Below, piece by piece: positions 10,009-63,979 of a stretch of DNA of 64,000 bases (its first letter is position 1; every line of letters begins with the position of its first letter). The notes under the pieces were generated by a model, which saw only the letters and a list, made by a program, of their open reading frames with translations, was not told where the DNA came from and searched no databases. The translations under genes were made by a program, and so were the position numbers. The DNA comes from Macrostomum lignano (Eukaryota), in contig NIVC01003789.1 in NCBI GenBank assembly GCA_002269645.1, forward strand, positions 72,070 through 136,069. Direction: 5' to 3'.

Positions 10009-13000
10009 GACGACCCGAGAAGACGAGAAGCTACCAGAAACAGTTGATTTATTGCAGCTGCAGTAGTGGAAATTAGATAAAACCAAGAAGCGTATGGAAC
10101 GCAACAGTATTGCGGAGGCAGCCGATGAGAAATAACAAATGGTTGAAGACAAGATCCATCCAAATAGTAATGAGTTGAAGGAATATATGAGAGTATAGGA
10201 ATGCAATGTTTAAGCCATTGACAAAATAGTGGTGATAATCGCGATAATCGGTGATCATCGCAGGAGTTGCATGTCATGAATACATTTTTGCCACGTTTTT
10301 TTATGCAGAGGGGTCGATTGAGCATTCTGGTGTATTCTGTAGTCTCAACCGCCTCAGCTGGAGGTTCCGTCGCAGCGGCCGCAGCAGTCGCTGCAGCCTC
10401 AGCCGGACGCTCCGTCGCAGCAGTCGGAGGAGTCGTCGCAGCCGGAACCGTAATATGTGCTGCATGTCCCGGCACATGTCGAGAACACGTGCCACGTTCT
10501 CAGCTCCTGTCTCCATGGACGCAAACTGCCTGCTGATCTGGGCATGAAACTCCGCTGCCTCCCGGTCCCGATCGGCGAGTTCCGCATGCAGCTATTGACA
10601 TCGCATGCATGGCATTGGGATATGGGCAGCGTCTTGGCAGTGCTCGTCTGAGCCGGTCGAGCAACCAGACTGCGAAACTTCTTAAAGCTGGTTGAGAGCG
10701 ACAGTGCTAGTGCCTTGTTGTCCACGGCGTCCGTTAAGACGGAGGCACGCTGCACACGGTTTCTTCTCACTGAAACGCCTGCCTCCCTGCCGTAACAGAG
10801 GTTACTCGGAAGAGACGCTTCGCTGTCTTCATTGAACACCGCCAGCTGTTGTCGACCAGCTACAGCAATCTCCTGCGGCGTTGTACTATTATCATACATT
10901 ACGACATACCAGGAGCCACAGTCTGCAACCAGATGACGGCAGATATGTAATAAAATGCACCTGTCGGAAAGCGTATGATATGTCGTCTGAGTAACATCTG
11001 GCATTTGATTACCGGCGTTCGCCATTGGCAGGGAATGCAGCGCGTGCGATCTGCAAAAGCATTAATGCAGTAAGTCTGTATAGCAGCCAGCCCACAGTGG
11101 CCACAGGTACATGTATTCACATTTTTAGTACGGACAAAGAAATTAGGCATTACTAAAGAATTGATTTCTGGCATAAGTTTTTTTTTCTAATTTACATAAT
11201 TTATGTTTTATTGAAGCTTTAATGAAGCTGAAATTCTTCATTTCCATTGGCTTCAATTTGAAATTGTACAGTTTTAGTTAGCTTTCTTGGGCATTTGGTA
11301 TACTTAATAGAAAAAGTATATTTATTAGAAAGTGAAATTCTAATAGCATTTTTCAAGCTAGTAGAAAGTGCGAGCATGGAACTAAATACACCATTTTACC
11401 CTCGATTTTGAACAAGAACTTCAAAACCGACAAACCCCTCTTCAATATTGACACTCTATGGTCGGGCACTCAAAATCTACAATCGATATTGACAGATGAA
11501 GCTTTAATTTTGACAAACTCTGGTTCAATTTTGACGATGCACTTTTAGTCATCTTCTGGGAGAATTGTGAATTCAGTAACAAAGTAATCCAATGAAAGCC
11601 TGAACAGGGCTGAATTTATCTGGGCAAAATCAGCTCATTCTGACTTTGCTTTTGGGATCTACAAGTATTGCTAAAATTGCATGACACGCGAAAAAAGAAC
11701 TATCCCCATTTTTTCGACACTATTTCGGCTAAAAATCATTAAAACATAAAACTAAAAGACCTATAGGCCATATGAAAAAAATGAGAAACTGCTCCAACTC
11801 AAGCATTTACTCGGGCCTGTATGAATAAACTGAGAAATTTTTCTCAAGAGAATTCGCTCAGATTTCAGAGCAAATACTCTGAGATTGAGCAATTACTCAG
11901 GTCAATAAGAATAAAACTACTACCATAGACTAAATTTCTGAGCAATTTAATGAGATTCCTCATTAAATTCATTCCTCATTCCTCATTCCTCATAAATTTG
12001 ATGAGGACGCACTTTTTTCCAAACCCCGCGCTAGCACATGGGCTCTAAACTTACTAGCCTACTAACAGTGGGCAATGGGCATTTTTATCCTTTTTCTGCG
12101 ATTTGTCGTATAATCTATAGTAGATATAATGTTTGGTCATACTAGTAGTCGTAATAACATAGGCGCAGCTTTTTGGGTCATAAATCATCGCTCTCGAAGC
12201 TGGTTTGACAGCCACCTGCGCCTCACTCAGTGTTGAGGCGGGCGCCACATGTTCTGAGGGGATGCGAATGATAGCTTTTTTCTCATCATTTTTGACAGGC
12301 CATCAGATTTATGAGGTCAGAGCCTATTGTTCGGGTTCACTCAAGCGTGTGACAGTTTTGACAGCTATGCGTTTTACCCCTAAAAGTACTTTGGGATTAG
12401 CGATTAGCGATTTCTCTTCATTATCTTCACTCTCTATTTAATAAGAGCTTTCTAATGAATATTTTTTCATTCATTTTTTTCAATTCTACGCGAAAAGTCA
12501 TAAATCATTTTGTTGCGATTTTGAGTGATTTATGGCCGCACCTGTCATGTTTTTTACGACCCTGTGGGAACTGATAGGATCTCCCGGTCACGTGATTTTG
12601 GGTGGCAACTAGCTCATCCAATCAGAAAATTCGACGCTCATTTTAACAAATCGGCTCAGCCAATCAGAATCGACGTGTTCCATTATAACAAACTGCGGTC
12701 CAGTTGGCGGCTATTTAAACCGGTGTTTTTGGCCCGCTCGGACTGCAACCTTCTTGCGACCGGGTGCTACCCTTGGCTCCACCGGCCAGGGACTGACCGT
12801 CGTTTCTTGATCCCCGGATTGCGACTTCCCCCGTCATCATCAAGGACGAATCCCCCCGGTCATCAGCAGTGAACATCAAAGTGAAGAGCATCACCTGCTA
12901 GCTATCAGCGAAGATTGTGACATCAGCATCATCCCGGGCCTACAGCTGCGAAGCACTAAGCCGATTCGGTCACTGTGGATTACCTGGTCTCCGGCTGTTG

Positions 13001-14758
13001 AGTTTCTGATTGGTTAGGTGAGAGGCTGCCCAAGGACTTCTAGACTAGCTAGTCTAGCTTGAGGCTGCCTAGACTTGCTAGATTGGGTGATTCCTTATCT
13101 GTCCCCTGTTTCAGTAGCTGGATTAGGCGCACACTTTTGCTCATTTTGTTCAGTAGTGCTGTAATCGAGGCAGAAGTCATTCAATAATACTGCTAGTAGT
13201 CTAAAACTCCAATTCAATCTGAAGTGTGAAGTGATCTAAGGAGAAGGTTAAATCTAACAGTTATTTTTATCGGTTTTATTCCTTTGTTCGCCGATGGCTC
13301 AGATGAATAGCTAAGCTAGTAGGCGCCGGTCACAGTGGACCAATGGCAAGGCAGTTCTCAATCGATCAATCTATCAAATAAGTTAGCGAAACTGCCAGTA
13401 GTGCAGAATCGGCGCCAGAGATGTTCTTTGTGCACTCTAAGTTCGCCAAGCGGCTCGGGTAATGAATCATGCGGTCTCTGAAGTTCGAGTTAGTCTATCA
13501 TCAGCGCTATGAGAAGCTAGTTGGCGCGTTGAAGGCCAGAAGTACAATTCCTCGTATTTAGCAATGTAATAGTACATGTAGCTACCCCATAGTCTCGCCA
13601 CTGCAAGAATACCCTGCACAAGTCCCCTATGTACCTGCATGGCCAATGCGATCTAGTCCCAGCAGTGTCCCTTATCATCGGCTATGACTTCGAGATTGAC
13701 AGCAAAAAGACACTAGTTGGCAGGTAAGTGCAAAGCCCCTTCTAGTCGGAAGCCCGATTTCGAGAGTCCCGGTGTGGTGAGCCAGGATATACGGGCTGGT
13801 GGCAGCGAGTTAGCTAATCTGCGGATTAACTAATTTCTACCTTCAAAATTCTCCCTGCTTGTCTCTCGCTGTCCCTCTCTTAGCTATAGGACCTAGACTG
13901 CTCGCCACACGATCAAGCTACCATGGGCTGACCATCTGACAGGAGTGGGGGGCCGGGACTCTAATTGATTTATTTCTGAGACCTGAGGCCTGAAGGCTTC
14001 CCCAAATGGGGGCCGGAAGGTCGAAACCCATCAAATTCCCCTCGCACCACCGTTCGACGTAAACAATGCCAGTGAGGCCGCGAAAAGAGCGGCCGGAGTC
14101 CAGCGCCGGAACGCTATCGCCGACATCATGTTCAGGCATGGGCCATGACAAACTGCGTCGCTATCCGTACTGACTTACCTCATGCTGCTTACGTTTGCTG
14201 TTTTTTCATATTTGTCTAAAACTTGATAAAGCCACGTTAAAGCGAGCGTTAAAGTGTCAACCCCAGCCTGTATATGGACATTCAATGTTATCCTGCCGAG
14301 TGCGTTAATGTGGGCCATAGAGAGTGCGTGAATGCGGTTGCGGCCATAGACAAAAAGAGTAACTATGTTTTATCATAGAACTTGAAACATAGAGGAGATT
14401 GAATACATGTATATTATGACTGAAGGTGGTGTATACGACAATTGCAAACCAAGCAATTATATAGAAAAAGAGTAATAGCACAATTGCGGCAGTGTGCGTA
14501 GCATAATTCCCTTTAAAGAGTATATAGATATAGATATGTATATGTACCTGTAGCTGGTACTTATAAAAATGGCTGGCTGGCTGGCTGGCTGGCTGGAAGG
14601 CTAGTGGCTATATTTTCAGGAAATTGTGCTTAGCATAATTCCTAAATAGTGCGCGACATACCAGCTAGATAGATAGCAAGCAGCAAGTAAAAATTATCAA
14701 TATGCAATTGCACAGCTATTTCAATATAGTTATAAATGCCATGCAACATTGAGCGCTA

Positions 14759-14796
14759 GAAATAGTGCTTGGCACCTCGGTGCCAAGCACTATTTC
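14759..14796. other. Perfect 18-bp inverted repeat (hairpin) with a 2-nt loop
   Basis: gaaatagtgcttggcacc-tc-ggtgccaagcactatttc. Confidence 0.95.
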
Positions 14797-15194
14797 AAAG
14801 CGCTTTGAACCCTTCAACCTGCAGCCATGTCCAACCAACCAGCCGACGAAGTAGTAGCTACTGCTAATATTAAAACCAACACTATACGACTATAGTCTAA
14901 TAAACGCTAGGAAAAATGTTATAACAATGGGCACGTAAACAATAAGAGAAAGGGATAGAACGCATAACAACGCGCGCAATATGAGGCGCAGATGCATTGT
15001 AATTATGAGATGAAAATATTGAAAAATATTGGGGCCAACATACATATAAAGGAGAGATGAGACAGTTACAACAAAAAAGAGAATCATCTACATTTCACTA
15101 TTACTAATTAATTCAGTTATGTTAATAGCAGCACTTATTAATTAATTAATTTACCTCAAGAGACACTCTAAGTTTGCATAAAAATTTGCAGCAA

Positions 15195-15365
15195 TGGTAA
15201 AGCGCACATTTACTAGATTTCATATAATGGTAAAGCGGTATTTAAAGTTTTAACGTTGTGGTAAAGCGGCCAACAGTTGAAATTTGCAGACAATGGTAAA
15301 GCGGTACTATTTAAGTTTAAACGTTGTGGTAAAGCGGCAAACAGTTAAAATGGTAAAGAGGCGGT
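15195..15365 (+). repeat. Array of six TGGTAAAG(C/A)G motifs overlapping the YR 3' end
   Basis: Copies at about 15195, 15228, 15259, 15294, 15327 and 15351, with a ~67-bp higher-order duplication. Confidence 0.9.
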
Positions 15366-17845
15366 AGACGCGCAGCATGCCTTGAAATTGATGCTTGGCA
15401 CCTACCCACAATGTCCTGCTTGGAGCTCCGAAAAATATTCGGGCAGACGCCGGAACGACCGAGTATAGCTTTGGCATGATCGACAACCGCCTGGCTGAAG
15501 GTGGAAATGGACATCCGCTCACCTCGGTTGGTGCACAGCACAAACGGCGAGTTGGCGACGCCGACCATGTCGTTGCAATGACGGCCGTTTCGCCAGGTGA
15601 GCAGCAGCTCAATGAATGCGGTCGGCACTGTGAGAACGCTGCAGCCGACAGACTTTATTTTCTTATGGCTGACCTGGCGACCAGGCAGCCGGATGGTCGA
15701 ATAGCCGTTGTCATGATTGTCGCGCCGACTGGCGCTACCCGGCCGGATGTGCGCTATGCGGAGACCGCGCCATGGCCGGACGCGCAGCGGATGCATCGCA
15801 GTGGCATGCAGAGCAAATCGATTGCGCATCTTAACAAAGCTGTCCTCGTCGGCTGGACCAGAGGCGACCAGTGCGGCGTAGTCGTCCAGGATGGTGCGCC
15901 ACTCCACCGGGGTTAACAGCTTCTCTTTCTTTCTGTCGTGGTGCAGCGGCGCATCCAGCCTATACTCAAGGTCGTGCGCTGGCGAATAGTTTTGAGCCGC
16001 TACTGAAACAGCTTGCACCTGTTTTCCAGCTCGGCTGCAATGTCGGCCGGCAGTTGCATGCGCTCCACCAGCGATTGAAGATGCGCGCGGTCGTGCTCAA
16101 CGTAGGCTTGCATGTACTGCATGCATTTTATTAGCGCTTGCGCCCTGTTTCTAACTGTGCCGGAGCTATTGCTGGTGGCTCGAACCTCCGTTGCGGCGGT
16201 CGTTGGGTTGGCTAAGCAACAGACTAAATCTCGCGGCCTCGACGACTGGACAGCTCTTGTCGGCGGCGCCGGCTGCTGCTGCTGCTGCTGCTGTCATCTT
16301 TGAGCAGACCGACAAGATCAGCAAAAAGGTGTCAATGAGAGCGTCAAGATGGCCGTCATGGGCTGGGTTGCGCACGCCTGTTGCATCGTTCCAATACAAT
16401 GACTGGATTACACGCAGCTGCTTTATCAGCGGAGCATCGGCCGAATACTGCGCCAATAGCGAAGAATGCCGCAGTGTAATCACAGCCAAGGCATCACGCG
16501 CCGCGATCGCCTCCTTGGCTGACATGGTCGTCGTCTTTGTCGTCGTCTCCGCTGCACCGCCGACGCTGACTGCCGCAGTCGAAGACGCGCTTGTCGCCGC
16601 CGTCACCGCCGCTACACCGCTGGCACCCGCCGCGATCGCCTTCTCGGCTGACATGGTCGCCGACGCCGCCGCCGCTGCACCGCCGCTGCTTACTGCCGCT
16701 GCCACAGTCGAAGACGCGCTTGCCGCCGCAGACGCCGCCTCCGTTGCTGCACCGCTGGCACTGTCATTGTCGTTGACGATGTTGACGGGTTGATCACCAG
16801 ATGGCATAATGACGTGGTGGCAGAATATTCTGTCAACTTAGCGCCGGCGGCGACCAGTTTTGCGTGCTTAGCGGCATGTTTCGTTGCGTCTCGGTAATAG
16901 CAACGACAGTCAGCGCAGTAGGTCTCGCGACGGACTCTCTTGACGCTGACGCTGCTACTACTGGCACTGCTGCGGTCTCCTGTTGGGCGCAAAATCAGGC
17001 TTCGCCACAACCAGGTAGTGCGCCTGTCCAGCGTCCAGTCGTCTGTCGTCGCGTCGTCGCCGCCATCGCCTACCGGCTGCTCCTTGATCCATGAGACATG
17101 TTTCGCCGCAAAGTGAGTCTTCAGGGCGTCGACACGCATCACGGCGGTGCAGTCCGGCACAGGGCATTTTCGAGCGTAGCGGATATTTCTGTTCTGGTTC
17201 GGCTTCTCGACAACCGACGGCGGCGGGGCATCTGCAGCAGTGGCGGCGGTGGTGTCGAAGCCAGCAGCTGCCGAAGACTCGCTTGCAGCGCTTTCTGTGT
17301 GTGTGCGGATGGATTGTGTATTGATATCGAAATCAGTTTTTGCTGCTTCAAATGCTGCTTCTTATTTAATAATAACTCCTATAATCAAAAACTAAAAACT
17401 ACAAAACCTGTTGCTGCTGCTGGAGGAGACAAAACAGCTGTTGATGCTGATGACCGCCGCATGCCAGGAGAATTAGACATCACGGCCGAGTATTGGACGG
17501 GCCGAAAGCTGATAGGTCGCCGCTGTCTGCAGTGGTATTAAATGCAAAGTGAGATCGTCTTTTGTAAATTTAGGAAGGTCAACTTAACGGAGCCTAACCG
17601 ACAGAGTAGCTTAGCTTATTAGAGAAAAATTGGAATAACTCTTCTTCTTTAAATCACATAGATCGTTAACAATCACCTGATACTGCTGCTGCTGCTGCTG
17701 CTGCTGCTGCGCTCGCTTCGTCACAACACAGGTCTGCTGCTGCTAATTCTTCAGCTTGATGGTGATCACTAGAGTGATGCGGAGGAGCTTCGAAATCGTT
17801 GCCGTAGCCGTCGCCGAAGAGGAGCCGCAGCAAACTGTCAAACAT
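15317..17845 (-). CDS. Tyrosine recombinase with N-terminal C2H2 zinc fingers and Ala-rich linker; fragmented by frameshifts, a stop and probable introns
   Basis: KCPVPDCTAVMRVDALKTHFAAKH and YCADCRCYYRDATKHAAKH fingers; core-binding-like SSGTVRNRAQALIKCMQY; catalytic-domain pattern MRNRFAL..MHPLRVRPWRGL (Arg), VSHKK (Lys), FVLCTNRGERM and PNIFR (H-x-x-R box with Asn). Putative first exon 17845-17677 ends at a GT donor. Confidence 0.7.
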
Positions 17846-19547
17846 GATTTTATACGATTCCTTTATTATTACAGTCTTGAGCCTCTATAGAAAGAGCTGA
17901 GAGCTAATTGGCTAAGCTTTGTGAATTAATTACTCTGTTTGGCTCAGTCAAGCTATTTTAAAAATTTAACTCCTTTTTCTTAACCTTTTATAAAGATAGT
18001 CTGAGAGAAGCTGGGACGAGAGGAATGGCCATAGACAAAATATTCCAGTGTCTAAGGCCCACCTCAGTGACACCGCTTTAACGCAATTCAAAGCCCAGTC
18101 TGTACAAGCTGACGGTTTATAGACCGATCGATCGATAATTTGGTTGGCCATAGACAGTTGCAGAAGATCTAAACTCAGAAAACCTCCCGTGTACAGGCTA
18201 AATCTTTAACACTGCCGCCGATTGCCGATTCTATTATAATGTATAGACTAGACTAATAATGGCTAATACAATTAAAGGCAGACAGGATTAAAATAACCAA
18301 AGCTGCAAATCCCATACAGTTATTCATTCGTCAAAAGATGACACAACAACTTTATGAAATTGAAAATTGATAATTTAAAAACATTGCTGAATATATGGAT
18401 GGTCAGAATGTTGAAATGTGAAATTGTAGATACGCAGCAAAAACTGCAACAAAACTGGTTTCAACAACAACAGAGAAAAGCAGAAGAAACAACCATCAAT
18501 CTGAATATAGAAAATCAATCGATCAATCTTGTAAAAACAAATCCACTTCCGGATTGCAACACCGTCAGTCCAAGTCATTAAATGTGTGAGTGCGTGCAGC
18601 CAAAGCTGTTGCCACACTACCCTTCTGTTAAGATGATAGAAAAAAATGTCTATTATATTTTTAGGCAATTCTGCTTGGCACAAATCCGAAATTGTGCTAA
18701 AGACCTATACGACCAGTCATTTTACGGCACTTGACTAGCATAATTGCGTCCCAATGCTTGGCATAATTCCTATAAAATAGTATACTTATATATCGGGGGC
18801 TATATCTGCATGCACAATATTAATTGTTTGCCGATAACTGTCGTCGCAGTCAATATGCATTTCACTGCTTTTATTTGCATTTGATGTAATCTATTTTAGG
18901 GCTACACTGCCTCTACATCACTGCTGTCTTTGATTTTGCGATTTAGTAGTAGCGATACTATTAGTCAGATAGAAGCACAAACCGCAGCTGCTGCTATTGA
19001 GACATCTATCTATCTTGATTGACAGGGAGGGAGCTGCTAACATGCTGCTGGCTGATGCAAACACACACAATATTAAAAAGATAGAACAGAACAAAAACTT
19101 GAATGCTGAAACAATTAAAGAGCCGCAGCTCATATCGTATTCAACTAATAAAACTAGCTAATCCACTCTAGCCCTCCCTAACCGAGTATAATTATTTGTT
19201 AGATTTTAGATGCAACAACATTCGTTACCTGTGTGTGTGCTTGCGTGCGTGCGCTTTACCTTTTTTGCGACTGATGGACCTAGCGTGCGCCACCAATAAC
19301 TTGTTTAACAACAACAACAACAACAACGTCTTTGATTTAGTAAATCTATTTTTGTAACTATGACAATTAACCTACTGCATAATCTTAGATGGGATTCTAA
19401 TTTTGAGAAATTTTTGTGCTTCCGCTTATACCTAATCTGTTATAGTCAACTTAAATTTTTTGATTCAGCATTCTTTTAATTAGTCTTTTTGGTCTATTGG
19501 CGGCGGCGGCGGCATCATCAGCGAACCCCAGCTAGCTGCCTGGCGAC

Positions 19548-21904
19548 CTAGACGTTGGCGGCGGCGTCCGCGGAGCCTTCCTGCTGGCAGCCAATGCATT
19601 CAAAGACGTTGTGCTCCATATGGAAGCACCTTCCACTGGCGGAAACGCGCCGCACAAAGTCAACTGGCAATTCTGCTGGCGGCACATGGCCCGCAAATAT
19701 GATACTGCCGACCCATTCGCTCTGCACATGGGCCTTGTGCTTTGCGTTTATGACAAATTTATCCCTATTCATGAGCAGCAGAAGCTGGCCCTTTGCCGCC
19801 TGTACCGGCTGCAGTTCGTCAAAGAATAGGCACTTGTGTATGCCTAATTTTAATCCGTCGAACGGAAAGGCTTCGGAGAGGTCCGGCGCGTAGACAGTCT
19901 CTCGGCCGAAATGTAAGCCGACCATCGCCGACTTGCCCACTCCACTGGGGCCCCACAAATAAATTATTGCTGGAACAGCCAGTCCTTGTCGCATGGCTGT
20001 GTAAATTTCACGCTGTATTGCACAGGCGCCACCAAGCGACAGTCTGTGTGTTGTTGTTGCTACGCAACGACGCCGCATTTAATGTCGCCTTCGACGCCAC
20101 GACAGCTGGCAATTGGCAGACGCCGCACATGCTTGGCCGTACCAGATTGGCCGGCATGGGGCTGATGCCTAGCTCCTCCGCCCGGATGCGGCGCATCATC
20201 TGGACAGAGCTGAAATAGTCCAGCGCCTTCTAAGCAACAACGGATTGCCGCACACTAGCTGCGGATCGTCGGGCCTCGGCTGCATACAGCCCAAAGGGTA
20301 GGACATGGCCCACCGATACAACAACACATTCCTGGACAGGCAGCCGTCGTCAATGTCCGTGACGGCTGCTGTCGGGTCGTTAAGTGTCACGCGGCGTATC
20401 TCCGCGTTTGCACTCCGTGCACTCCGGATCTCAGCGTTTGTCCACCCTTTAACGGCGAACGCGTCCTCGCTGGACCCCGACGCAAACAGGCTGCGCAGTC
20501 TGCCTATCAGATCTACTGTGCTATGTAGAGCATTGGTGCGGACAAAGACTAGCACAGACTTGGTGCCAGCTATTGGACAGCTGGCAGTCGGGGCGTATGG
20601 GTCAACCATATGGGTTGGAGATAGGATAAATTCATTCTCCGCTAAGCCTATAGTTTTAGCATTATTTAAGTCAATGTTGTTGTTGTTGTTGTTTTTAATT
20701 ATTGGTTGGTTTGGCAATTTTAGTTTTTTGTCGGGGATGGGGTGGGTGTGTGATTAATTTAAAATGGTGCGCAAAAAATCGCAATAATACTCAGCTACAT
20801 GATTGTTTTTTCTACCAAACCAAGATACATGCATGCAAAATATGTATGTATATGAAAGCGTTTTTACTCACCAATTGCCAGTTGTGCCGCGTAACTGTTG
20901 CTCCATGCGCTGTTCAGCAGCATCTTGAATTGCGGCGCGTTGCGGACATGGGAGAGCTGGACAACGGACATTGCCCGGAATGCCCTTCGGCTTGTCTCGG
21001 CCGCGGCGGTGACGCTCCGGGAAACAGCCTCGGCCGGATGCAGTGGCACGCGTGGCGCCAGGAGCCGCGATGTGGTGCACTTTGGTTGCTGTTGCTGCTG
21101 CCGATGGTCGTCCTGCTGTACACCCAGTGCCGATGCAGCGTCATCGGCATCAGACGACAAACTGTTATTGGCGCCGTCGTATCCAGCTGTTGCCTCATGG
21201 GCGGCCGCAGCCATCGAATATACTGCTGCTGGTTCTGTCGCAGGCGACAGCGGATGCGGAGCTTTGAATATAGGTTCAGCAGCATAACTTGAAGCAGCAG
21301 CAGCTTGTCGACGTTGGTCGCTGGTAAACAACGAGTATGATTTAACGGACGGTGACGGAGTCCTTGAAGCCGCAAAAGCGAATCGAGCCGCTGTCGTCGA
21401 TCCCGCAGGTTGGGCGAAGGCGAAAGGCCTGACTCCGACTGCCGCCCCGATGATGCGCGGCTGCCGTTTCAGTGCTGGCTTTGGTACTGTTGACGACGCT
21501 CCACTATTGCTGGAGGCAGCGGCGGCGTCCCTATCGGTGGCGATGCACTGCACCTTGGCCGCCGGAGACTGATGTTGCTGTTGTTGGCTCGGCAGTTCGC
21601 GTTTCAACGATTGTTGAGAGTGCATCTGTGCCGGTTATGTCTTGTAGGCAGAGCGAATCGGCGTGTCAGCATCGTCGTCGTCGCTGTCCGGGACGACGAT
21701 GCCCGTAATGGTGCAATCGGCATCGACGTCAGCGTCGTTGGTATTCAGCGCCGGTGGCGGCGATGAAGCTGGGGTGTCTGCGGCGAACAGAGATGCCGCC
21801 TCCAGTTCGGCGAACGCCTCCAGTTCGGCCTCTTCGCAGGCAGCCAGTAGATCATCGTCTAACACAAAGTCGTCATCATCGTCAGGAAAATTGTTGGTTG
21901 CCAT
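19548..21904 (-). CDS. CRESS-type Rep-like protein: acidic/low-complexity N-terminus, degenerate HUH-like domain, SF3 helicase
   Basis: Exon 21904-20872 (one in-frame TAA at 21635-21637), in-frame GT-AG intron 20871-20648, exon 20647-19548 with two frameshifts; Walker A GPSGVGKS (~19952-19929), Walker B LFFDE, B' LLLLMNRDKFVINAKHK, motif C IIFAGH, Arg finger FVRR. Confidence 0.8.
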
Positions 21905-23009
21905 TATTCGCGATGAAGCTGACTACAGAGCTGGAACGGCGGGCTGTCTTTTAATGGATGGATCATTATTATGCCTTGCACACTGTTTTCTGTTCCTGCT
22001 TTTCTTTCTTTCTTTCTTTTTCGGGTCACGGACATTGTAGCTAGACGTAGCTAATAGGACCGGGGGCGTAGCCCCATGCAGCCGGGGCGCTGACCCTGCG
22101 CGGGCGGGCAGTAGACGGCGGAATCCAATTTGCGGCCTGCGGCGGGTGGCCAGAGAGCGTGGGGACCCGAGTCCCGGTGCGCAGGGCTCCTCCGCAGACC
22201 GACTTACGCTGTAAAAACCGCCATCCACCGCCAACCCAACGTTGGGGGACAGCTCTCCCAGGCTGCATACCCGGAGGTGAGACCAATTCGTCACCCCGTC
22301 GATGGCAGGGACGCACGGAGCTCCTGCCACATTGGCGGGGTGTCCAGGGGCGCGACGTGGACGCTGGTCTCGTGCCACCCTCTGTTCCTGCTGCTGCTGC
22401 TGCTGATGCGATATACATTAAGGAAAAAGTGCTGCTAGGCTATAGCTACTGATTATTTGTCTATGGTAGAAAGACTCAGTTTGAGACTAGCTAAAGCAAT
22501 ATATATATATTTTTTAAGGGAAAAATGCTAGGCACAGCTGCCGCGTTGTGCTATTAATAACATTTTTATACTAGGTAGTCTATGGCATGGCGTGTGAGTA
22601 GTGACTGACTGCCGCATTAACGCACTCTACCGCTTTAACACACTCGATATCGCTTTCACGCAGGAGCCGAATTAACGTAGCCGCGTTAACGCAATTTTTA
22701 CCGCTTACACTCAGAAGCATATTTGTCAACGTTTGTTTAAAGCTTCCTAACTAGGTAAACTAATTGTAAGGTATAGCAATCTGACCCTAACCTGCCTAAT
22801 AATATTACCGTTAGTAAATAACAACTGTGTTTTACGTTTGTTATGACAACAATAAACGTTTACCGTTTTTTCTTACTTGTCGTCGTATATTTAAAGCATC
22901 GTAACCACGTAAACTAATTGTAAAGTAACAATTTGACTGTAACGTAAGTAACAATATTAACAATAACAAGTAACAAGCGTGCTTAGCAGTCCGAAAACCT
23001 ATAATAATC

Positions 23010-23520
23010 TTTATATTGGCCCCTAAAGTTGCATATACGAAGCAGACGCATCCCGGAAGTCGCTTGTGTGCTGTTGCATCTGCGACTGTCGTTGGTAGGC
23101 CTCCCGTTCCAGCTCGCGCCGTTTCTTCGTACGAAAATACCTGAGCTGCTCGAGTAGCAGCATTTGCTGAAGCTCTCGGCATTGCTCAGTCCTATCGTCT
23201 CAGTCGTCTCGTTGGTGACTCGTCACGGCGCGGATGCTCTCGCAGACTGCTGCCGTGATTGAACGCTCGCAGGCGTCGAGGGTTGGCGATCAGACTCCTC
23301 GCTGCTCGGGCTGGGTCTCGGAGGGTGTCTGTGGTTCATCGTCGTCAGCAAGTTGTGATGCAACCCCACACACACGAGCGCCAGGGACCTTGGAAAAAAC
23401 TGGGTTTTCCTCGATGTTGAAAAACTGTAGCATGGATTCTTCCCACTTCTTCAGAACAATCTTTTTATTTCCGGTCTTCTTCAAGTCCGTCTGCTTTCAG
23501 CCGTATACAATATACGAGCT
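23010..23520 (-). pseudogene. C-terminal half of a Myb/SANT-like (Harbinger accessory/MSANTD-type) protein
   Basis: LKKTGNKKIVLKKWEESMLQFFNIEENPVFSKVPGA then, across frameshifts, ELQQMLLLEQLRYFR; the SANT domain itself is not seen. Confidence 0.45.
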
Positions 23521-23597: not shown

Positions 23598-24740
23598 TTA
23601 ACCTTTCGGCTGACGTTTGTATATAACTAGTCGAGCATCTGACGAAATATTTTTCAGCAAAGACGTAGAAGTGCTTAGCTCTGTAGTCATTAGATCGTCC
23701 AGCAAGTAGCATTTGTCACCTTTTGATGGAAATACATAAGCGACGTAATGACCTTCGTCGACTCGTTCTCCCAGGTGCACAATAACACTTTGGAGGCAAT
23801 AGCGCCGATTGTTATAGTCAATTTCTGGCGTAAAATCGAAGCCCACTCGGTTCTTGACAATAGTTGCCTGGCTTCTCAAGAGCCTGTTCACGACTAAGCA
23901 CAGGAGAGGTGGCGCATTTTGAGGAGTTCTGCTATGAACGCAGCTACTTGTCTGACAAGCTGTGCATGTGATGTCATCAGACTCGTCGGGTCGTAGTGCC
24001 GCATTCACAAGCTGGATCAGCTGCTGTCCTTCAACTGGTTGAACCACCACGAATGTTTCATGCGAACTTTCAGTAGTCGCGGCATTATTGCACCGGAGAC
24101 AAAGGTTGGACCCGCCGAGCTAAAATAATAAAGACAAACAGCTGAGACGGAATTGAAAACATCGATTTAAAGGGCCTGTACTCTCTTACTGCCATCTATG
24201 CTGTATGTGACCGATCCAGGATTCATATTTGTTTACATGTATTTGACTCTTTTTACTACATTAGTTCCCTATGATAATTGTCATTTCAAATGGTTTCCGT
24301 TCAAAAGTAAAGCAAGTTTCTGTAAGTGTTTTTGAAATTTAGATACGAGCGTATTACCTGAATTCTAAACTGGCGACGAATAGTCTGCAGCTATTGAGAA
24401 ATGAGCACGAAAAATTCAAAGCAGTCGTTATATTCGTTGGTATTTATTTGACCAGCCGTACAGCATTCTTCCAATGCAGTGTTGTACAAATCTTCGCTGA
24501 ATCCAGATCCGCTCGAAATGTTGGCCAAGAGTCGTATAAGAAAGGACGAATTCACTGCTGTTTCAGAAAAATTTCTCCCTGACAATGCCGCACCAACTGC
24601 GTGAAGACTGGCGTTGAACCAACAGAGTTTTCCATTACGATTGGGTAAGCCGAATGGACGATAGCCTGATGTCGATAGCGCCGAAGCTTCGACAGTAACA
24701 AAACTGGCGACATGATCAGAACAATCAACAAAAGCATGAG
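23598..24740 (-). CDS. USP (peptidase C19) deubiquitinase domain, spliced, one in-frame TAG
   Basis: Cys box GLPNRNGKLCWFNASLHAV; EYNDCFEF box; in-frame GT-AG intron 24357-24120; CLRC and CTAC zinc ribbon; His box VIVHLGERVDEGHYVAYV...YLLDD. Confidence 0.85.
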
Positions 24741-25846: not shown

Positions 25847-28800
25847 TGTTGTGCTTTTGGCTTTTAGCCTTTAGCAATTGTCACTAGCGGTCTGCTGACC
25901 TCTGACGCGTCTATTATTTATTTCATAACTCAATAGCATGGTTCAATTCATCAACGCAGTCGCGTAACAAAAATGTCTATGGCAAAGCCATCAACCCACA
26001 ACACCCTCCCTCTTCTATAGGTAGGTGTACAATTATCACTCAGGTGCGATAAAAAATTCTAGTTTTCTTGGCCAAGCGTTCGCTTCGCCTGGGTGACGGC
26101 TTGGATTGAACTCCAACCTCAGTCTGTTGCTGTTGTGCTCTCTCAGCTTGTTCTGTTCCCGGTAGTATCTCAGTGTCTGTCGATGACGGACGCGTCTGTT
26201 GGCCGTCGTCACTTGGACCGTTGCCACCGGGCTTGGAATCCCCCATTTCCCTAGTTCCGTGAGCCTCAGGTACCTCACCGATTCGTAGTTGATCGAGGTG
26301 GGTCTTTAGATTTCGTCCAGTCTCTGTGGTGACGACTGCTGTGTTGCTGCCAAGCATTTTGGCGAATCTCACAGTTCGTGGCTCATGAGAACTCGATGCA
26401 CGGTAGATGAGTGATTCTTCTGGGATCCACTTGGACTGAGTGCTGCTCTCCGAGATGGGGAGTCTTATTTGTCTGCCGTTCAACAACTCGGACGGTGATG
26501 CTTGCTGCTTCCCTTTGGCAGCTCTGTAGAACAGTAGAAATCTGTCAATACTTCTTTGGGATAAACCATTGGTCTTGATTGTCTCTTTGACGGTTCGCAC
26601 CATTCGCTCTGCAATGCCGTTGCTCTGTGGATGGTAGGCGGGCGTTGTGATGTGCGAACAGCCAATCTGGGTGAGCCAGCCGGTCACCGCTTCGCTCACA
26701 AAACTAGGGCCGTTGTCTGACACGAGACACTTGGGCACCCCCTGTTGTGAGAACAATCTTCTAAGTCTGGAAATGACTGTGTCGGCCTTCATGTCGCTCG
26801 TGATGAAGACTTCCGGGTAGCTCGAGTGCGCATCCACAATTATGAGTAGGTACTTGCCCTCTATCGGACCGGCAAAATCAATGTGCACTCGCTCCCAGGG
26901 GTTGTCAGGTTCTGGCCACGAGTGCCGAAAGTTCTTATTTCTGGACTTGTACGCGTTGCACACGTTGCATCGTCCAATGTAGTCAGCGATGTCACGGTCC
27001 ATCTGTGGCCACCAGAACTGTTCCCTCAAAATTGACTTTGACTTTTCCACCCCAAGGTGCGTTGAGTGTACAGCTGCCAGGGCAGTTTCTCTCAGGACAC
27101 GAGGCAATACAATTCTGTTCATTCTGTAAATAATTCCATCATTGACAGTTAGCTCATCTTAAACCTTCGAGTAGCCGAGTAGGTGTGGGTCGTCAAATAG
27201 ATTATTGTTAATTATGGCTGCGCCCAGGCATCTGAACTCCGGGTCCTCTCTGGTTGCGTGTGCAATGCGATCCAGCTGAATTACTCCCGGGTTGTCAGCT
27301 TCGAGGAGTCCGATCGATGCTGTCTGTGCATTCGGCTTAGCGGGCACCAGTCGAGATAGCGCATCCGACAGCATTAGCTTTGATGGTCGATACTGTATGA
27401 CATAGTCATAAGCAGCTAGCATGATTGCCCATCGTTGTAGTCGAGCTGAAACTCTGGTGGGCAGCTGTTTGTCTGGCGCGAATATGTATGTGAGGGGCCG
27501 GTGATCAGTTATCAGTGTGAACCTCCGGCCATACAAGAACCGATGGCATCTTTGAATGCACCAAACCAGTGCCAGGCCTTCACGCTCTATTTGCGAATAT
27601 TTTGTTTCGGCGTCAGACAGAGTCTTGCTCATGTACAGCACGACTTGACCGCTTTGTGTCAACACTCCGCCCAGAGCTCGCTGAGAACTGTCGCATTCCA
27701 GTTCAATGGGCTTCTCCGGATCAAATATTTGAAGACTCGATTGATCAGAGAGAGTGACCTTGATTTCGTCAAATGCTATTTGACACTCCTTTGTCCACAC
27801 GAAGTCCTCATTTTTCTTTCTTAGTCGATTGATAGGCTTGGTCAGTGCAGCTAGGTTTCTGATGAACCTGCCGCTAAAATTTACGAGACCCAGGAAAGAT
27901 TCAAGCTCGCCAACGTTCTGCGGTGGTGTCATGTCCTGGATTGCCTTCACTTTGGCTGGGTCCGGCTTGAGCTGATCTCCTTCCAATAAGTAGCCTAGAA
28001 ACTTGATCGAAGTCTTGCGGAATTCACTTTTCGCCGTGTTGATCTTCAATCCTTGCTGGTTTAGTCGATGCAATACTTCTGTCTCACGAACTGCCAATTG
28101 TTCTACGCCTTTGCCGCATATCAATATGTCGTCTACGTAGGCAATGACGCCAGGAATTCCTTGTAGGACTTGGCTAATGTACCGCTGGAAGATCGCAGGT
28201 GCTGTTTTCACTCCGAACGGAAGCTTGTTGAAAGCGAACATCCCAAATGGTGTTGACATTACTGTCAGCTCTTTGGAAGCTTCATCTAGTGGGATCTGGT
28301 GATAAGCTTTCTCTAGGTCCAGACGAGTGTATATCCGGCTGCCAGCAGCAGTTGCAATCACTTCGTCAGGTGCAGGCATCGGATATGAATCGTTGATAAG
28401 ATGAGAATTGATTGTCACCTTGTAGTCGACGCAAAGTCTGAGCTTTCCAGAAGGTTTCTTGACCACGACAATTGGTGAGGCCCATTCACTGAACTTGACG
28501 GGCTTGATGGTGTCTTCTTCAAGCAACCGATCGATTTCATCCTTGACTTCCTGTCTGAGTGCGAAGGGTAGCGGCCTGGGTTTGCAATGAATTGGAGTGG
28601 TTCCTTCCTTGATCTTAAGAGTTACTGGTGGAAATTCGCATGACTGGGTTGCCGATGTGCAGCTGTTGTCTACAGCGTTTAGCGTGAAATTGAGCTTGTC
28701 TCGGCCAACCAGAACAAACTGCGATTCCACAATGAAGAATGTGATTGGAATGAACTCGTCATTGTACTCCAACTCAGTGTCGTGTGTTCCAAAGACCTTC

Positions 28801-30180
28801 ATCTGCGTATCAGCGTATGTTGTCAGAACAGTGTCTGTAGGTGTCAGTTTTGGACAACCCAATCGTTTCCAGATCGTTTTTGACATTACCGAAACTCCTG
28901 CCCCAGTATCGATTTGTGCGTTCACGCTAAGCATCGACCCGCTCGTGTGTCTGAGCCTAACAGGCACGGTGTAGCTATCAACGGGATGTCGAATGTGAAA
29001 ACAATCCTCCTGTTCAGCTTCGCTTGCATCTACAAAGCTTGTGGTCCTTGGGCACACTGCAGCTCGCCTAAATTGACCAGATGCTGACGGGCTTTTGAAC
29101 GATTTTCGGCCTTTGCCAAAACCAGTTGATTTCGTTTTGCAAACTGTTGCGAAGTGGTTTTGCATGCCACATTTGTTGCACGTTTTTCCTTTCGCAGGAC
29201 ACCCTCCATTGGAGCCATGCATTGTGCCACATCTGCCACACTTGGAGCTTGTAGAATGGGAGCCTCTGGTCACCGATGCTGAAATTTTCATTACTTCAGA
29301 AGACTGCGGCTGACTGGTGCAACCCTTTAGTATTTGCGTTTGTGATAGGTTCTGGTGCGCCTCAGCGATGTTGATAGCTGTCTCAAACGTGAGAGTGCTG
29401 AAGTCCTGTTCCAATAACTTGCTGATGGCCACCTTGTCATTCAAACCGAATACGAGCTGATCTCTCAGTCTCTCATCTCTGGATAGGCCAAACTGACACT
29501 TGTCTGCCTGCATGCAGAGTTGCTGTGCATACTCACGAATGCTCATTGATGCCGTGCGAGTGATATGCTGGAAATTGAATCTCTCAGCCATGACGAACGT
29601 CTTTGGTTCCAGGATGCTGGCCAGTAGTTTGGTCAGTTCATCGAAGCTCTTTTCTCCCGGCTTCTTGGGAGCGGCTCGGTCTGCCAATGCGTCGTACAGC
29701 TTGGTGCTGAGCTTCATCAGCAGCAGCTTGTTTTTCGTGTCGTCCTGCCAGCCGTTGAGTTCGCTGCACAGTGTGAATCGGTCCAACCACCTCTGGAAGT
29801 TCGAACTTTCATCGAGTTTTTCGATGTCAACTTGCTGTCCTCTCGATACTTGTGCGCTTGGGTTCTGCGCTGTCGCTGTTGCCGACTTTGTCGCTTGGAC
29901 TGATTTCGACGAGATCGCAAGCGGTGGTGCTTTGTCGCTCGAAACCGTTTTACCAACTCCTTTAGTTGGCGATGCTGGCGTACTTCCAGGCATTTTCGTA
30001 GCCTATGCTTGCCGACGCCACTGTTGTGCTTTTGGCTTTTAGCCTTTAGCAATTGTCAGTCTAGCGGTCTGCTGACCTCTGACGCGTCTATTATTTATTT
30101 CATAACTCAATAGCATGGTTCAATTCATCAACGCAGTCGCGTGACAAAAATGTCTATGGCAAAGCCATCAACCCACAACA
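25847..30180 (-). mobile_element. Full-length Ty3/Gypsy LTR retrotransposon (Mag-like), young
   Basis: LTRs 25847-26003 and 30022-30180 (TG..CA, near-identical); TSD ATTCT; PBS-like TGGCGTCGGCA; PPT aagagggaggg; gag-pol 29993-26040 with CCHC knuckles, DTGA protease, YVDD RT, RNase H and integrase; one TAA before the integrase. Confidence 0.97.
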
Positions 30181-34100: not shown

Positions 34101-35249
34101 ATGTGATTTTTTGAAAAATTGATTTTTGTTGGTTTTCTCAGCACTGCATAATCGTATTGAGGTGGGGGTGGAGAAGAATTTTCTTGGAACTCTCGGTTTC
34201 AAAATATGCTAACACCAAGGGTGAGGTGGGGCAGATTCCTCGTTTGAATTGCCGCCAGCATTGTAGAAGCACAAATAAAGCCGGAAAATGCACGAATTGA
34301 TGCACTGACTCTTCTTCTTGGATGCTCCATCTGCCGGGTCCTCAATTCTGGGGGAGGGTAGTCGTAATCGTAGTCGAGCGGTCTTGTAGTGGCCCGAGTC
34401 GTTCAGAAGGGGTCCTCAGACACCCTAAACTTGTAATTCGTCGAGATTGCTAGTTGTGTTACTCTCAGTAGTAAAGTAGCGCTGCCACTACCGTAAATGT
34501 CATTTTACGGAATGTTGAGGGTCTCAGAGCTTTCTTTGAGTTGAGACTGATTGGTTATTTTACGCCTCGTGGGCAAAGAACTCAATATAAACTAGAGGCT
34601 TCGATTAAGACCAACTGGATAAATATTAATGATATTTGTGAACTTATTATTATTTTGTTATTATTATTATCGTTTAATTTTGCAGTAGTCAGTGATTAAG
34701 AAATTGTTATTACTCACGAAGTTAATTGAATAAAAGACAAGCTAATTGACTAATAAATGAAGTTGTTACACATTACAATTAGATAGATGATTACGAGACA
34801 GTGCCGTGCAACTATCAGAAAACTAACAAAGCTAAGTTAAGTCATGGCCTATAAGATCAAACTAAAACAACCAAGAAGAAAGAAGAAAAGGGGGGAGGGG
34901 GGTTGACAAACTAAAGCAACGCCAAAGATTAAATACCAAAAGAATGCAAAAAAACAATCAGGGGGACACCAGAGGGAACACTGGTGGAAAAAGTGGACAA
35001 ACCCGGGTGGAAAATGGCAAAACAAAGCGGGACCAAGGGAAGGGGCAACCGATGGACCGGAGGTGGGAACAATGGGGGGAAGAAGACAGTTCAACCGGGA
35101 GAGCCGAAATGACATCAAAGAATCGTCCGCCGGGTGGAGGCGTTCCGAGTGTCGCCAACTGTTGCCGAAGCCCCAGTGGTAGACCAGCCTACCACAGGTG
35201 CGGGGGCACTGGGGGACCTGGCAATAGACGATGACCGCCTCTAGTTGTC

Positions 35250-35999
35250 TTAGGTTCGGCGGCCCTGTGTCGCCGGCCAGCCGCGGCGAGCAGGGGCCTC
35301 AGGGTCGGGCTGAATTGAGCTGGCAACGCGGGTGTGGTGGCTGAGCTGCAAAAGGGCCGGGGTCAAACCTCGCCCCAGTGTCGCCGCATTGTCCACGAAG
35401 TGCCCGACCAGCAAGCAGAAAGTCCCATAGGGCAGACTTCCGGTTGTTGGCTGCCGCTGCTACTTGCACAAAAAGTCGGCCATTGCTAATACAGCGCGGG
35501 CCACTGCCGGTTGTCCTCGGGTCTGCACATAGCTGCGCCAATGGCGGCCGTCTGACATCTGCCGATTGTTGCCGTCCCCGGCGAGCTCCCATAGCAATAG
35601 CTCGGCAAGGTGCTGCACTGGTTTGGCCAGGGGGGCAGCAATTTCAGCCACCACTGGCAATGGCTGGCTTGACCCGCTTGTCCAATTGGTCGGCGGGATT
35701 GGCGGGGTGACGAATGGTTCCAGCCCCAGCATGCAGATGGGCTCCGGTTCTGGGGCCAGCAGGATATTATCCACCCGTTCGAGTAGCTGGTGCAGGCCGG
35801 TGCCGAGGCTACTCGCTGGCGAGGGCGCCAGAGCCGATGGAGCCGGGCCCGGTGCAGCTTCGCCGAAGGGATCGAAAGCCGCGAGCAAGTCCTAATCAAA
35901 ATCTTCGTTGTTGGCATTGCAGCCATTGGCGCATTCTAGCGCTTCGCGGATTTCACGGCTGAGCGGAGATTCATCTCCCATTGGGTCGTCGGCATTCAT
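35250..35999 (-). pseudogene. Extra sense-strand ORF (ORF3) of the large Gypsy element, unknown function
   Basis: One frame from ATG 35999 (MNADDPMGDESPL..) to ~35250 with two internal in-frame stops; Pro/Ala-rich then helical. Confidence 0.45.
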
Positions 36000-36929
36000 A
36001 GTCAATTAGGTGTTACAGATTGCAGAAATCTCACTGAGCAATATTCTTGGCCGATCACGCACAATTTTATGAAATACAAAGAAAGGCTCCTTTAAAAAGG
36101 GCACAAAATAATTCAACTGGTGGAATTTTAAACCAACCAGAGGAAATAAAATTCAACCACTGGAATTGAGCCATCACCCCTGTGCACTCTAAGGTGGCAC
36201 ACAGAGTTGGGGTGGGCGCATGAATCAAGGAGTCATAAAATAGATAACCGCGCGGCAGGGGTCCAAAATCAGAATGAATGAATGGGGCACCTCGCATGGC
36301 TCACAACAGGCTGGCGGTTAGAGAGAGGGGGGCTGAATAATTGCATAAACAGTAGTTTAGAAAATAGTAAGAAACATAGGGTAGTTCCTAAAAATTAGAA
36401 TAGCAGATAAATATAGGCATGGTAACCAAGTTAGAATTTGGATCTCCATAAGGAGTTACACAAAATGGCAAAAGGCACTGGGAAGGGGCTGGACAGGTGC
36501 CCTTACAAATTTTCCCAGGCTCGGCTTGGTCAGAACAAAGAAAAAATGGGGGCCATTCACCTCAGATGCCCTCCGCTGAGGACAAGGCCTAGAGCCAAGG
36601 TGGCTCGACCTGAGCGGGGCAAAACGCTGGGGGCACCCAAGCAACATGGCTTGCAAAATTAAAAGATACCTTCAGCCATAAGCAAAGACTGCAAGGTTTA
36701 CAACTGAAAAAAAACTTTGCAAAGTTAATGACACGCAATTGAGCAAAATTAATGAATTGCATGCGGATAAATAATTGTCACGTAGGTGCTAGCTTTTTCC
36801 ATCAAGCCTAAGGCTAAATATCAGTACGCAGAAGTGCAGGTCACGTTGAATAAATATGGGCACCAATTGAGCATGAGCACAATATACAAAGGCTTTTGAC
36901 CGGAAAGTGTAAGGTGCAGAAATTGGGAA

Positions 36930-37130
36930 AATTAGTTGCTTTTGCCCTCAAGCATAAGGAAAGTACATTGAGAAACACTGCTTTTGCCATCAAGCATAAG
37001 GAAACAGACAGAAAAATTAGTTGCTTTTATCCCTCAAGCATAAGGAAAGTACATTGAGAAACACTGCTTTTGCCATCAAGCATAAGGAAATGGACAGAAA
37101 AATTAGTTGCTTTTATCTCGAAAGCATAAG
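36930..37130. repeat. ~84-bp tandem duplication inside the Gypsy 3' region
   Basis: aaattagttgctttt..ccctcaagcataaggaaagtacattgagaaacactgcttttgccatcaagcataaggaaa repeated about 2.3 times. Confidence 0.85.
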
Positions 37131-62690: not shown

Positions 62691-62707
62691 GCAAGTGCTG
62701 ACTGCAG

Positions 62708-63979
<1,272 letters not shown>

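Follow-up and report, generated by a model that had tools for sequence, protein, structure and literature searches.

Here, we describe a broken copy of a gene derived from a viral replication initiator (Rep) in Macrostomum lignano, on a 64,000-nucleotide stretch of contig NIVC01003789.1 (positions 72,070 to 136,069 of the forward strand), which we call the window and whose numbering we use unless another locus is named. The gene, present as a single copy in the 64 kb, occupies 19548..21904 on the minus strand and contains one in-frame stop, two frame changes and one GT-AG intron. We propose that the locus is probably a decayed copy of a nuclease-dead gene family that derives from the Rep of viruses whose circular single-stranded DNA encodes it (CRESS DNA viruses) and is resident in eukaryotic genomes.

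In coding order, the gene opens with a region of about 300 codons (20990..21904) that is acidic at first (D+E 28% in codons 1-90) and then a low-complexity tract rich in Ala, Ser, Pro and Gln, with Ala at 20% overall. An initial annotation made from the sequence alone had described an acidic, low-complexity N-terminus of about 340 aa; its composition is as described and its measured length is somewhat less. The in-frame stop lies in this region. A paralogue of the gene elsewhere in M. lignano (locus L006, 8454-9536) carries a similar low-complexity N-terminal region in a single open frame, and the similarity between the two acidic N-termini is not significant by BLASTP. There follows a degenerate HUH-type N-domain (20244..20989), identified as such through BLASTP, hhalign and hidden Markov model (HMM) comparisons and interrupted by an intron. 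It contains the motif I-like VVQLSH (20965-20948), SVLVFVRT in the motif II column of the family alignment (20558-20535), IRRVTLND in the motif III column (20399-20376), with Arg in place of the catalytic Tyr, and YRWAMSYP (20318-20295).

The putative spliceosomal intron (20648..20871; 224 nt, 32% GC, phase 1) runs from GTGAGT, preceded by an exonic G, to TATAG; these are canonical borders around an AT-rich interval, and its removal joins the exon-1 frame to the exon-2 frame, so that both the borders and the frame linkage fit the intron as originally predicted. Next comes a Cys-rich linker (20001..20243), to which the family pattern CxxC...Cx6C belongs and which in this copy stands in a shifted frame: the linker frame differs from both of its neighbours, which amounts to two frame changes, or to three stops when one stays in the frame of the neighbours. 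In the shifted frame the linker gives a weak but collinear match (E 0.08) to a family HMM built without the window, and no significant BLASTP match to the M. lignano protein P0001. The C-terminal part is a superfamily 3 (SF3)-type P-loop ATPase domain (19548..20000), recognised by HMMER, tblastn, AlphaFold and Foldseek, with Walker A GPSGVGKS (19952-19929), Walker B LFFDE (19829-19815), motif C IIFAGH with His replacing Asn (19703-19686), the Arg pair VRRV (19655-19644) and a C-terminal Hx4CxGC (19613-19587). All motif strings quoted at the outset, including the His at motif C, are indeed found in the minus-strand translation of 19548-21904. What escaped the initial annotation is that the stop and the two frame changes keep the gene from being read as one spliced frame; the window copy is best regarded as a non-functional pseudogene.

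Kinship with CRESS Reps and loss of the nuclease residues

The ATPase is the part of the gene whose ancestry is easiest to trace. An exhaustive HMMER search of 1.8 billion protein representatives with the ATPase open reading frame (ORF) returned 15 matches, four of which we discarded as spurious. Two of these, P0003 and P0009, scan as SprB-repeat proteins; the other two, P0013 and P0015, which were not domain-scanned, were judged by the same pattern of many short matching stretches. The remaining matches are family members, several of them from metagenomes, intact Reps and one Pfam-confirmed CRESS Rep. The closest, P0001 (E 4e-21), is M. lignano PAA62424.1, encoded on another contig; P0011 and P0012 (E about 1.5e-4) carry the full set of Rep motifs, namely FFxTV, HxHAYL, KY[IV]TKED, Walker A and B, and the motif C Asn; and P0014 (E 9e-4) contains Pfam Viral_Rep and RNA_helicase. 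By tblastn, P0012 matches the window at E 9e-10. The Walker A and B motifs of the window align with those of intact Reps, as does VRRV, by alignment only, with their Arg finger R. At the motif C Asn, by contrast, every intact relative has N, and each degenerate member seen has H, V, S/T or C instead.

Structure prediction for the ATPase, from a 14-row alignment, gave a predicted local distance difference test (pLDDT) of 70.3. Searched with Foldseek against the PDB, the model had as its top matches Rep40/68 of adeno-associated virus 2 (AAV2), papillomavirus E1 and the Rep of porcine circovirus 2 (PCV2), at E 8e-5 to 7e-3 and with template modelling (TM) scores of about 0.4; TM-scores are modest throughout the structural comparisons (0.4-0.5). 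Among the top 50 matches in BFVD, about a dozen of which had no name to hand, the named ones were CRESS Rep, parvoviral or bidnaviral NS1, or E1, with a phage dsDNA helicase as the one exception. Because of the HMMER matches, the pLDDT of 70 and the top Foldseek matches, the P-loop ORF is, judged by its sequence and predicted fold, a Rep-type SF3 ATPase. It scores below the Pfam gathering cut-off for RNA_helicase / PPV_E1_C (12.2 bits against 21.5). The word-indexed protein search found no matches for the helicase ORF and four proteins for the full-length family alignment; that index apparently lacks P0001, which is a row of the query alignment and yet was not returned. The initial suggestion of a retained SF3 helicase is thus borne out for Walker A and B, the Arg pair and the homology and model of the ATPase, but not for motif C, where the Asn is gone family-wide.

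For the upstream domain, the evidence lies in comparisons between the degenerate family and its intact relatives. The exon-2 ORF of the window matches the N-terminal part of the family protein P0008 (BLASTP E 2e-8), and P0008 in turn can be aligned collinearly, and in a single segment, with P0016, an intact Rep (E 2e-7); the segment extends from motif III across the helicase, and in it a W faces the catalytic Y. Profile-profile comparison of degenerate with intact N-domains (hhalign) gives E-values of 6.7e-6 to 2.5e-4. An HMM of the degenerate N-domain scores 17-25 bits on P0011, P0012, P0016 and P0017, a level reached by 0/400 shuffles, and the reciprocal HMM of intact N-domains gives 20 bits on L002. 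Both groups have xxT..D and YRWA-type motifs at equal spacing before the ATPase. The upstream domain is therefore supported, by these sequence comparisons, as homologous at family level to the nuclease domain of CRESS-type Reps, and its HUH ancestry, while not proven, appears likely. VVQLSH stands at the distance expected for motif I (uuTu, first strand), but in a part where the alignment is unstable.

What sets the family apart is the loss of the nuclease residues. We compared the N-domains of the window and six further loci: the M. lignano paralogue L006, and L002, L010, L011, L018 and L019, which come from metagenomes or sequencing-run assemblies. In these seven divergent members the position of the catalytic Tyr is taken by R in the window and by S, W, R, D, S and A in the others, and motif III of the window reads RVTL where intact relatives have Y[IV]TK. 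The HUH column reads SVL in the window (ALH in thinner alignments) and TLS, EIH, TVA or QLK in its relatives, as against H[ILF]H in intact Reps. The placement of this column at SVLVFVRT, as first proposed, is upheld by the five-member family alignment, while thinner alignments place it at NALH, nine residues downstream; under either placement the window has no intact HUH. Locus L010 offers an uninterrupted frame of 434 codons from the N-domain to the stop, with IRRVTQCD close to the window's IRRVTLND. Since the Tyr is absent from seven divergent members, the uninterrupted L010 among them, the loss of the HUH pair and the catalytic Tyr is, on the aligned sequences, family-wide and not a product of decay of the window copy. 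The initial annotation had reported the metal-binding His pair and the catalytic Tyr as missing, which is true of the window and its six relatives alike, and had named intact copies that keep HUH and YxxK as the sign of copy-specific decay; the uninterrupted L010 frame lacks both.

The intact relatives reveal the kind of genome from which the family came. P0012, P0016 and P0017, all with intact HUH and YxxK, are encoded on Logan contigs of 2.3-2.7 kb (L003, L004 and L005), two of which are taken as circular because of their 30-nt terminal overlaps. All ORFs on these contigs lie on one strand and comprise a Rep, an Arg-rich capsid-like ORF and a small ORF, each homologous among the three. Pfam gives no match to them that reaches the curated cut-off, and for the capsid-like and small ORFs it gives no match of any kind; the contigs look like an uncharacterised, unisense CRESS-like group. 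Connected to them are three IMG/VR genomes of 2.57 kb (P0016 against L009 is collinear, E 2e-7), where Pfam Gemini_AL1 was found in both Reps scanned and RNA_helicase in one, and where two of the three genomes have a TAATATTAC stem-loop. The family is thereby shown to descend from a Rep encoded by CRESS-type viruses with small, circular DNA genomes.

Several features point to residence of the family in eukaryotic genomes. Family contigs carry GT-AG introns at several positions. Those of the window and L002 nearly coincide, within or just after the second strand; that of L006, when placed on the family alignment, is offset upstream by about 20 codons, though its donor context is identical; and L010 has no intron in the N-domain region where the window has one. 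A strictly conserved intron position, considered at one stage, was downgraded in view of the L006 offset and the uninterrupted L010. L012, L018 and L019, which are AT-rich (33-38% GC), eukaryote-like contigs bearing the nuclease-dead family, have two introns in common: the first interrupts the linker, and the second follows Walker B. Two Cys/His clusters, a linker CxxC...Cx6C and a C-terminal Hx4CxGxC, are absent from the viral relatives, and L006 adjoins the ordinary host genes COG7 and EME1. The scan of IMG/VR for the degenerate family yielded no member, nor did the scan of the metagenome collection. In the window itself there is no capsid homologue at E<=0.01, and no nonanucleotide stem-loop with NANTATTAC in its stem was found in 13000-23500; the missing capsid gene and origin contradict an integrated whole CRESS virus.

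The neighbouring gene and the surrounding sequence

Downstream of the Rep-like gene, and on the same strand, lies a second gene (15307..17160, minus strand) that is fragmented over ORF pieces in two frames. Its layout leads from two zinc-finger-like motifs of the form CxxC/HxxxH through Ala-rich repeats to a region that resembles a tyrosine recombinase (YR), in which LRIAHI, HKK, NIFR and H...Y can be read in YR order and spacing, with N or D at the His of HxxR. A homologue with the same layout is found in L006 (14941-16554; E 1e-3 over 187 residues). Aligned by hhalign with lambda Int, Cre, XerC/D and FimB/E, the neighbour falls in register at E 0.007 and a probability of 5%, compared with 86% for the control of Cre against other YRs, and the word-indexed protein search with the YR-like alignment gave no matches. 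The YR assigned to this gene by the initial annotation is thus recognisable in the order and spacing of motifs, as read by eye, but is not backed by any significant profile match.

At both M. lignano loci the Rep-like gene and this neighbour are found within a few kb of each other, at an identity between the window and L006 of 40% for the ATPase and 22% for the neighbour. The pairing of two otherwise orphan genes at two such divergent loci argues for a linked module. Short repeats surround the YR-like gene only: a unit of about 55 nt occurs in direct orientation at 14476-14532 and 18736-18792 and inverted at 18646-18699 (span 14476..18792). A perfect palindrome of 38 bp containing TTGGCACCGGTGCCAA lies at 14759-14796, and the 64 kb contain four matches to GTGCTTGGCAC, every one of them located in 14765-18681, a count that is not significant. 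In L006, the Rep-like and YR-like genes are separated by an element of about 720 bp (11201-11922) whose 48-nt terminal inverted repeats match perfectly and which contains a helix-turn-helix ORF of Tc1/mariner-like type; beside the element lies a GA-rich satellite (12875-14480).

Elsewhere, the window is rich in long terminal repeat (LTR) elements and satellites. An LTR retrotransposon on the minus strand (25884-30180) looks like a young insertion; it has 120-nt terminal direct repeats that are 99% identical and ORFs for a 944-aa reverse transcriptase/RNaseH (27159-29993) and a 360-aa integrase-like protein (26040-27122). The 944-aa protein is encoded, without any difference, on contig NIVC01003789.1 of assembly GCA_002269645.1, which the literature connects with M. 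lignano. A large LTR-type element probably occupies 34221-46114, where direct repeats of about 1 kb (34221-35197 and 45116-46114; 92-96% identical, 10.9 kb apart) enclose minus-strand ORFs at 37841-43990, and a third probably lies at 57783-62301, with 188-nt direct repeats (57783-57970 and 62114-62301; 99% identical) on either side of three plus-strand ORFs (57971-62034). Tandem arrays have periods of 36 nt (49105-50270), 33 nt (53144-53506), 16 nt (54782-55700, with many units 100% identical), 21 nt (56122-56818) and 8 nt (62565-63750). Just upstream of the Rep-like gene, an ORF for a ubiquitin C-terminal hydrolase (23598-24050, minus strand; Pfam UCH, E 3.9e-11) could be a host gene fragment or cargo.

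Interpretation and alternatives

In light of these findings, what might the family be and do? We envisage a captured CRESS Rep that would now be housed by M. lignano and several other organisms, and that since its capture would have gained introns, a long acidic and low-complexity N-terminus and two Cys/His clusters. Every member seen has lost the catalytic Tyr, the HUH pair and the motif C Asn; both Walker motifs are kept, as are the two Arg that follow motif C. Such a protein should be unable to nick and join single-stranded DNA (ssDNA), and with that to start rolling-circle replication; its most likely role would be that of an oligomeric DNA-binding nucleoside triphosphatase (NTPase). In M. 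lignano the gene may have been duplicated or moved together with its zinc-finger/YR-like neighbour as a two-gene module, and if the neighbour is a recombinase, DNA breakage and joining would fall to it.

A number of observations weigh against this interpretation. The hhalign probabilities that accompany the N-domain E-values are just 43-85%; the intact-family HMM gives only 2.2 bits on the window N-domain alone, a score equalled by 3/400 shuffles; and the AlphaFold model of the N-domain, made from an input spliced across the intron only and a 5-row alignment, has a pLDDT of 37.5 and a predicted TM-score of 0.24. Hence the order of an HUH Rep upstream of the helicase, as originally claimed, holds at the level of family sequence homology, and the HUH fold is not confirmed. 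All P-loop matches to Pfam, PHROGs and NCBIfam among the ORF pieces of the window are sub-threshold, and the loss of the motif C Asn makes NTPase activity, as predicted from sequence, uncertain. Since the genome assembly is presumably based on long reads, part of the stop and frame breaks may be assembly errors. As for the module, the neighbour has no YR-supporting match in Pfam, PHROGs, NCBIfam or the PDB, the two genes, in tandem in the window, converge in L006, and no termini were found that are common to both loci or that enclose the pair. The evidence for the module comes from two M. lignano loci.

The alternatives differ in how much of this picture they give up. That the missing His and Tyr merely reflect decay in one copy of an ordinary endogenous CRESS Rep is barely credible: a stop and frame changes are indeed present in the window copy, but the Tyr is absent from seven members at 25-55% identity, among them the uninterrupted L010 with its IRRVT, and copy-specific decay is contradicted by these seven. 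Quite improbable, too, is that only the ATPase derives from a Rep and that the upstream domain resembles HUH nucleases by chance. The failure of AlphaFold on the N-domain, the weakness of the window alone against the intact HMM and the ambiguous placement of the HUH column would all be accommodated by this view, against which stand the collinearity of P0008 and P0016 from motif III into the helicase (E 2e-7), the 17-25 bits of the family HMM with 0/400 shuffles, and the equal spacing of the xxT..D and YRWA-type motifs before the ATPase. Possible, if still unlikely, is that a captured Rep was exapted as a cellular gene family in non-replicative use, of which the window holds a dead paralogue, and that the neighbour either does not encode a recombinase or plays no part in mobility. 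This would sit well with the intron positions common to L012, L018 and L019, the conservation of the new Cys/His motifs, the small number of copies (P0001 is the sole member of its 90% cluster), the position of L006 beside COG7 and EME1, and the precedent of apvRep and U94 (PMC10193959). It is less easily reconciled with the frame breaks in both M. lignano copies examined or with the transposon-rich surroundings of the window gene, and, unless the genes were co-duplicated, it is difficult to account for a pairing with a second orphan gene at loci that are 40% and 22% identical.

The most ambitious alternative is the one from which the analysis set out, namely that a dsDNA episome or integrating element has in this protein a functioning replicative helicase that binds its origin, with the YR carrying out strand exchange, in a replay of the passage from Rep to E1 and large T. 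In its favour are the dead nuclease residues alongside Walker A/B and an Arg pair kept across deep divergence, a Cys cluster between N-domain and ATPase that would, by analogy, occupy the position of the large T zinc domain, a conserved neighbour with YR-like motif order at two loci, and the precedent of E1 and large T themselves (PMC6668415). Yet no origin-like repeats were identified beside the gene, no episome or element termini were found, and the family is absent from the viral contigs of IMG/VR. In addition, the motif C Asn is lost, support for a YR falls short of significance, the genes are oriented differently at the two loci, the copy in the window is disrupted, and the multi-intron members look like resident cellular genes; we consider this alternative unlikely. 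We are similarly doubtful of the related view that the Rep-like and YR-like genes form an undescribed eukaryotic mobile or episomal element, in which a nuclease-dead Rep of CRESS origin would serve as a DNA-binding NTPase and a highly divergent YR would do the cutting and joining. The independent shift away from a Rep that was first proposed stands in so far as the loss is independent of E1 and large T, since the nearest intact relatives are CRESS-like and not Papovaviricetes; binding of an origin, replication of dsDNA and a sharing of tasks with the neighbouring gene are conjectural parts of that proposal. We therefore retain, as the probable reading, a decayed copy of a CRESS Rep-derived, nuclease-dead family resident in eukaryotic genomes.

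Comparison with known systems

In the open-access literature we found no pairing of a Rep-derived ATPase with a YR-like gene, no account of the family in flatworms, and nothing that matches a YR + SF3 element or Cryptons in M. lignano. If the linkage with the YR-like gene proves general, the pair would be a new kind of two-gene element; if not, the family adds one more captured Rep. Cryptons are the nearest comparison for the neighbour, which shares with them zinc-finger-like motifs, the order and spacing of R...K...xxxR...H...Y and bracketing short repeats, but which, unlike them, matches no YR profile significantly. To our knowledge, no Rep-derived ATPase partner has been described for Cryptons. 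Replitrons differ in having a live HUH domain and no helicase.

With CRESS Reps (Gemini_AL1 or Viral_Rep plus RNA_helicase), the family shares the order of nuclease-type domain, linker and SF3 ATPase, and the window gene is significantly related to intact Reps of circular genomes of 2.5-2.7 kb. It differs in that the window gene lacks motifs II and III, stays below the Pfam thresholds and has no capsid gene or nonanucleotide stem-loop nearby. Compared with endogenous CRESS Reps, the dead configuration persists across the family, which is not a recent fossil. The capture is old enough for introns and new Cys/His motifs to have arisen, and the states before and after it are directly comparable because the closest intact relatives still circulate as circular viruses of 2.5-2.7 kb.

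Captured Reps with a dead HUH motif and a mostly missing Tyr are known from avipoxviruses (apvRep, from cressdnaviruses) and from human herpesvirus 6 (U94, from a parvovirus) (PMC10193959). As in the present family, a Rep has left an ssDNA virus, the nuclease motifs are dead, Walker A/B are kept along with part of the other helicase motifs, and the function is non-canonical or not known. The differences lie in the recipient, which is a eukaryotic genome here and a large DNA virus there; in the introns, the low-complexity N-terminus of about 300 codons and the two new Cys/His clusters of our family; in the YR-like gene adjoining the window copy; and in the donor, a different, unisense CRESS-like group. 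The two earlier cases thus concern large DNA viruses and the present one animal and other eukaryotic genomes.

Lastly, E1 and large T have an N-terminal, HUH-derived domain without any of the three motifs, fused to an SF3 ATPase (PMC6668415), and the modelled window ATPase has E1 among its best structural matches. The nearest sequence relatives of our family are CRESS Reps, so any parallel would be convergent, and the family lacks the motif C Asn and is not on a viral genome. Of the path from an HUH nuclease to the non-catalytic DNA-binding domain of E1 and large T only the end points are known, and independent cases help to reveal which features go first and which persist. Should the Rep-like and YR-like genes truly form an element, they would represent an independent and still-observable switch from a rolling-circle initiator to a structural, origin-type protein, of the kind presumed to have given rise to E1 and large T.

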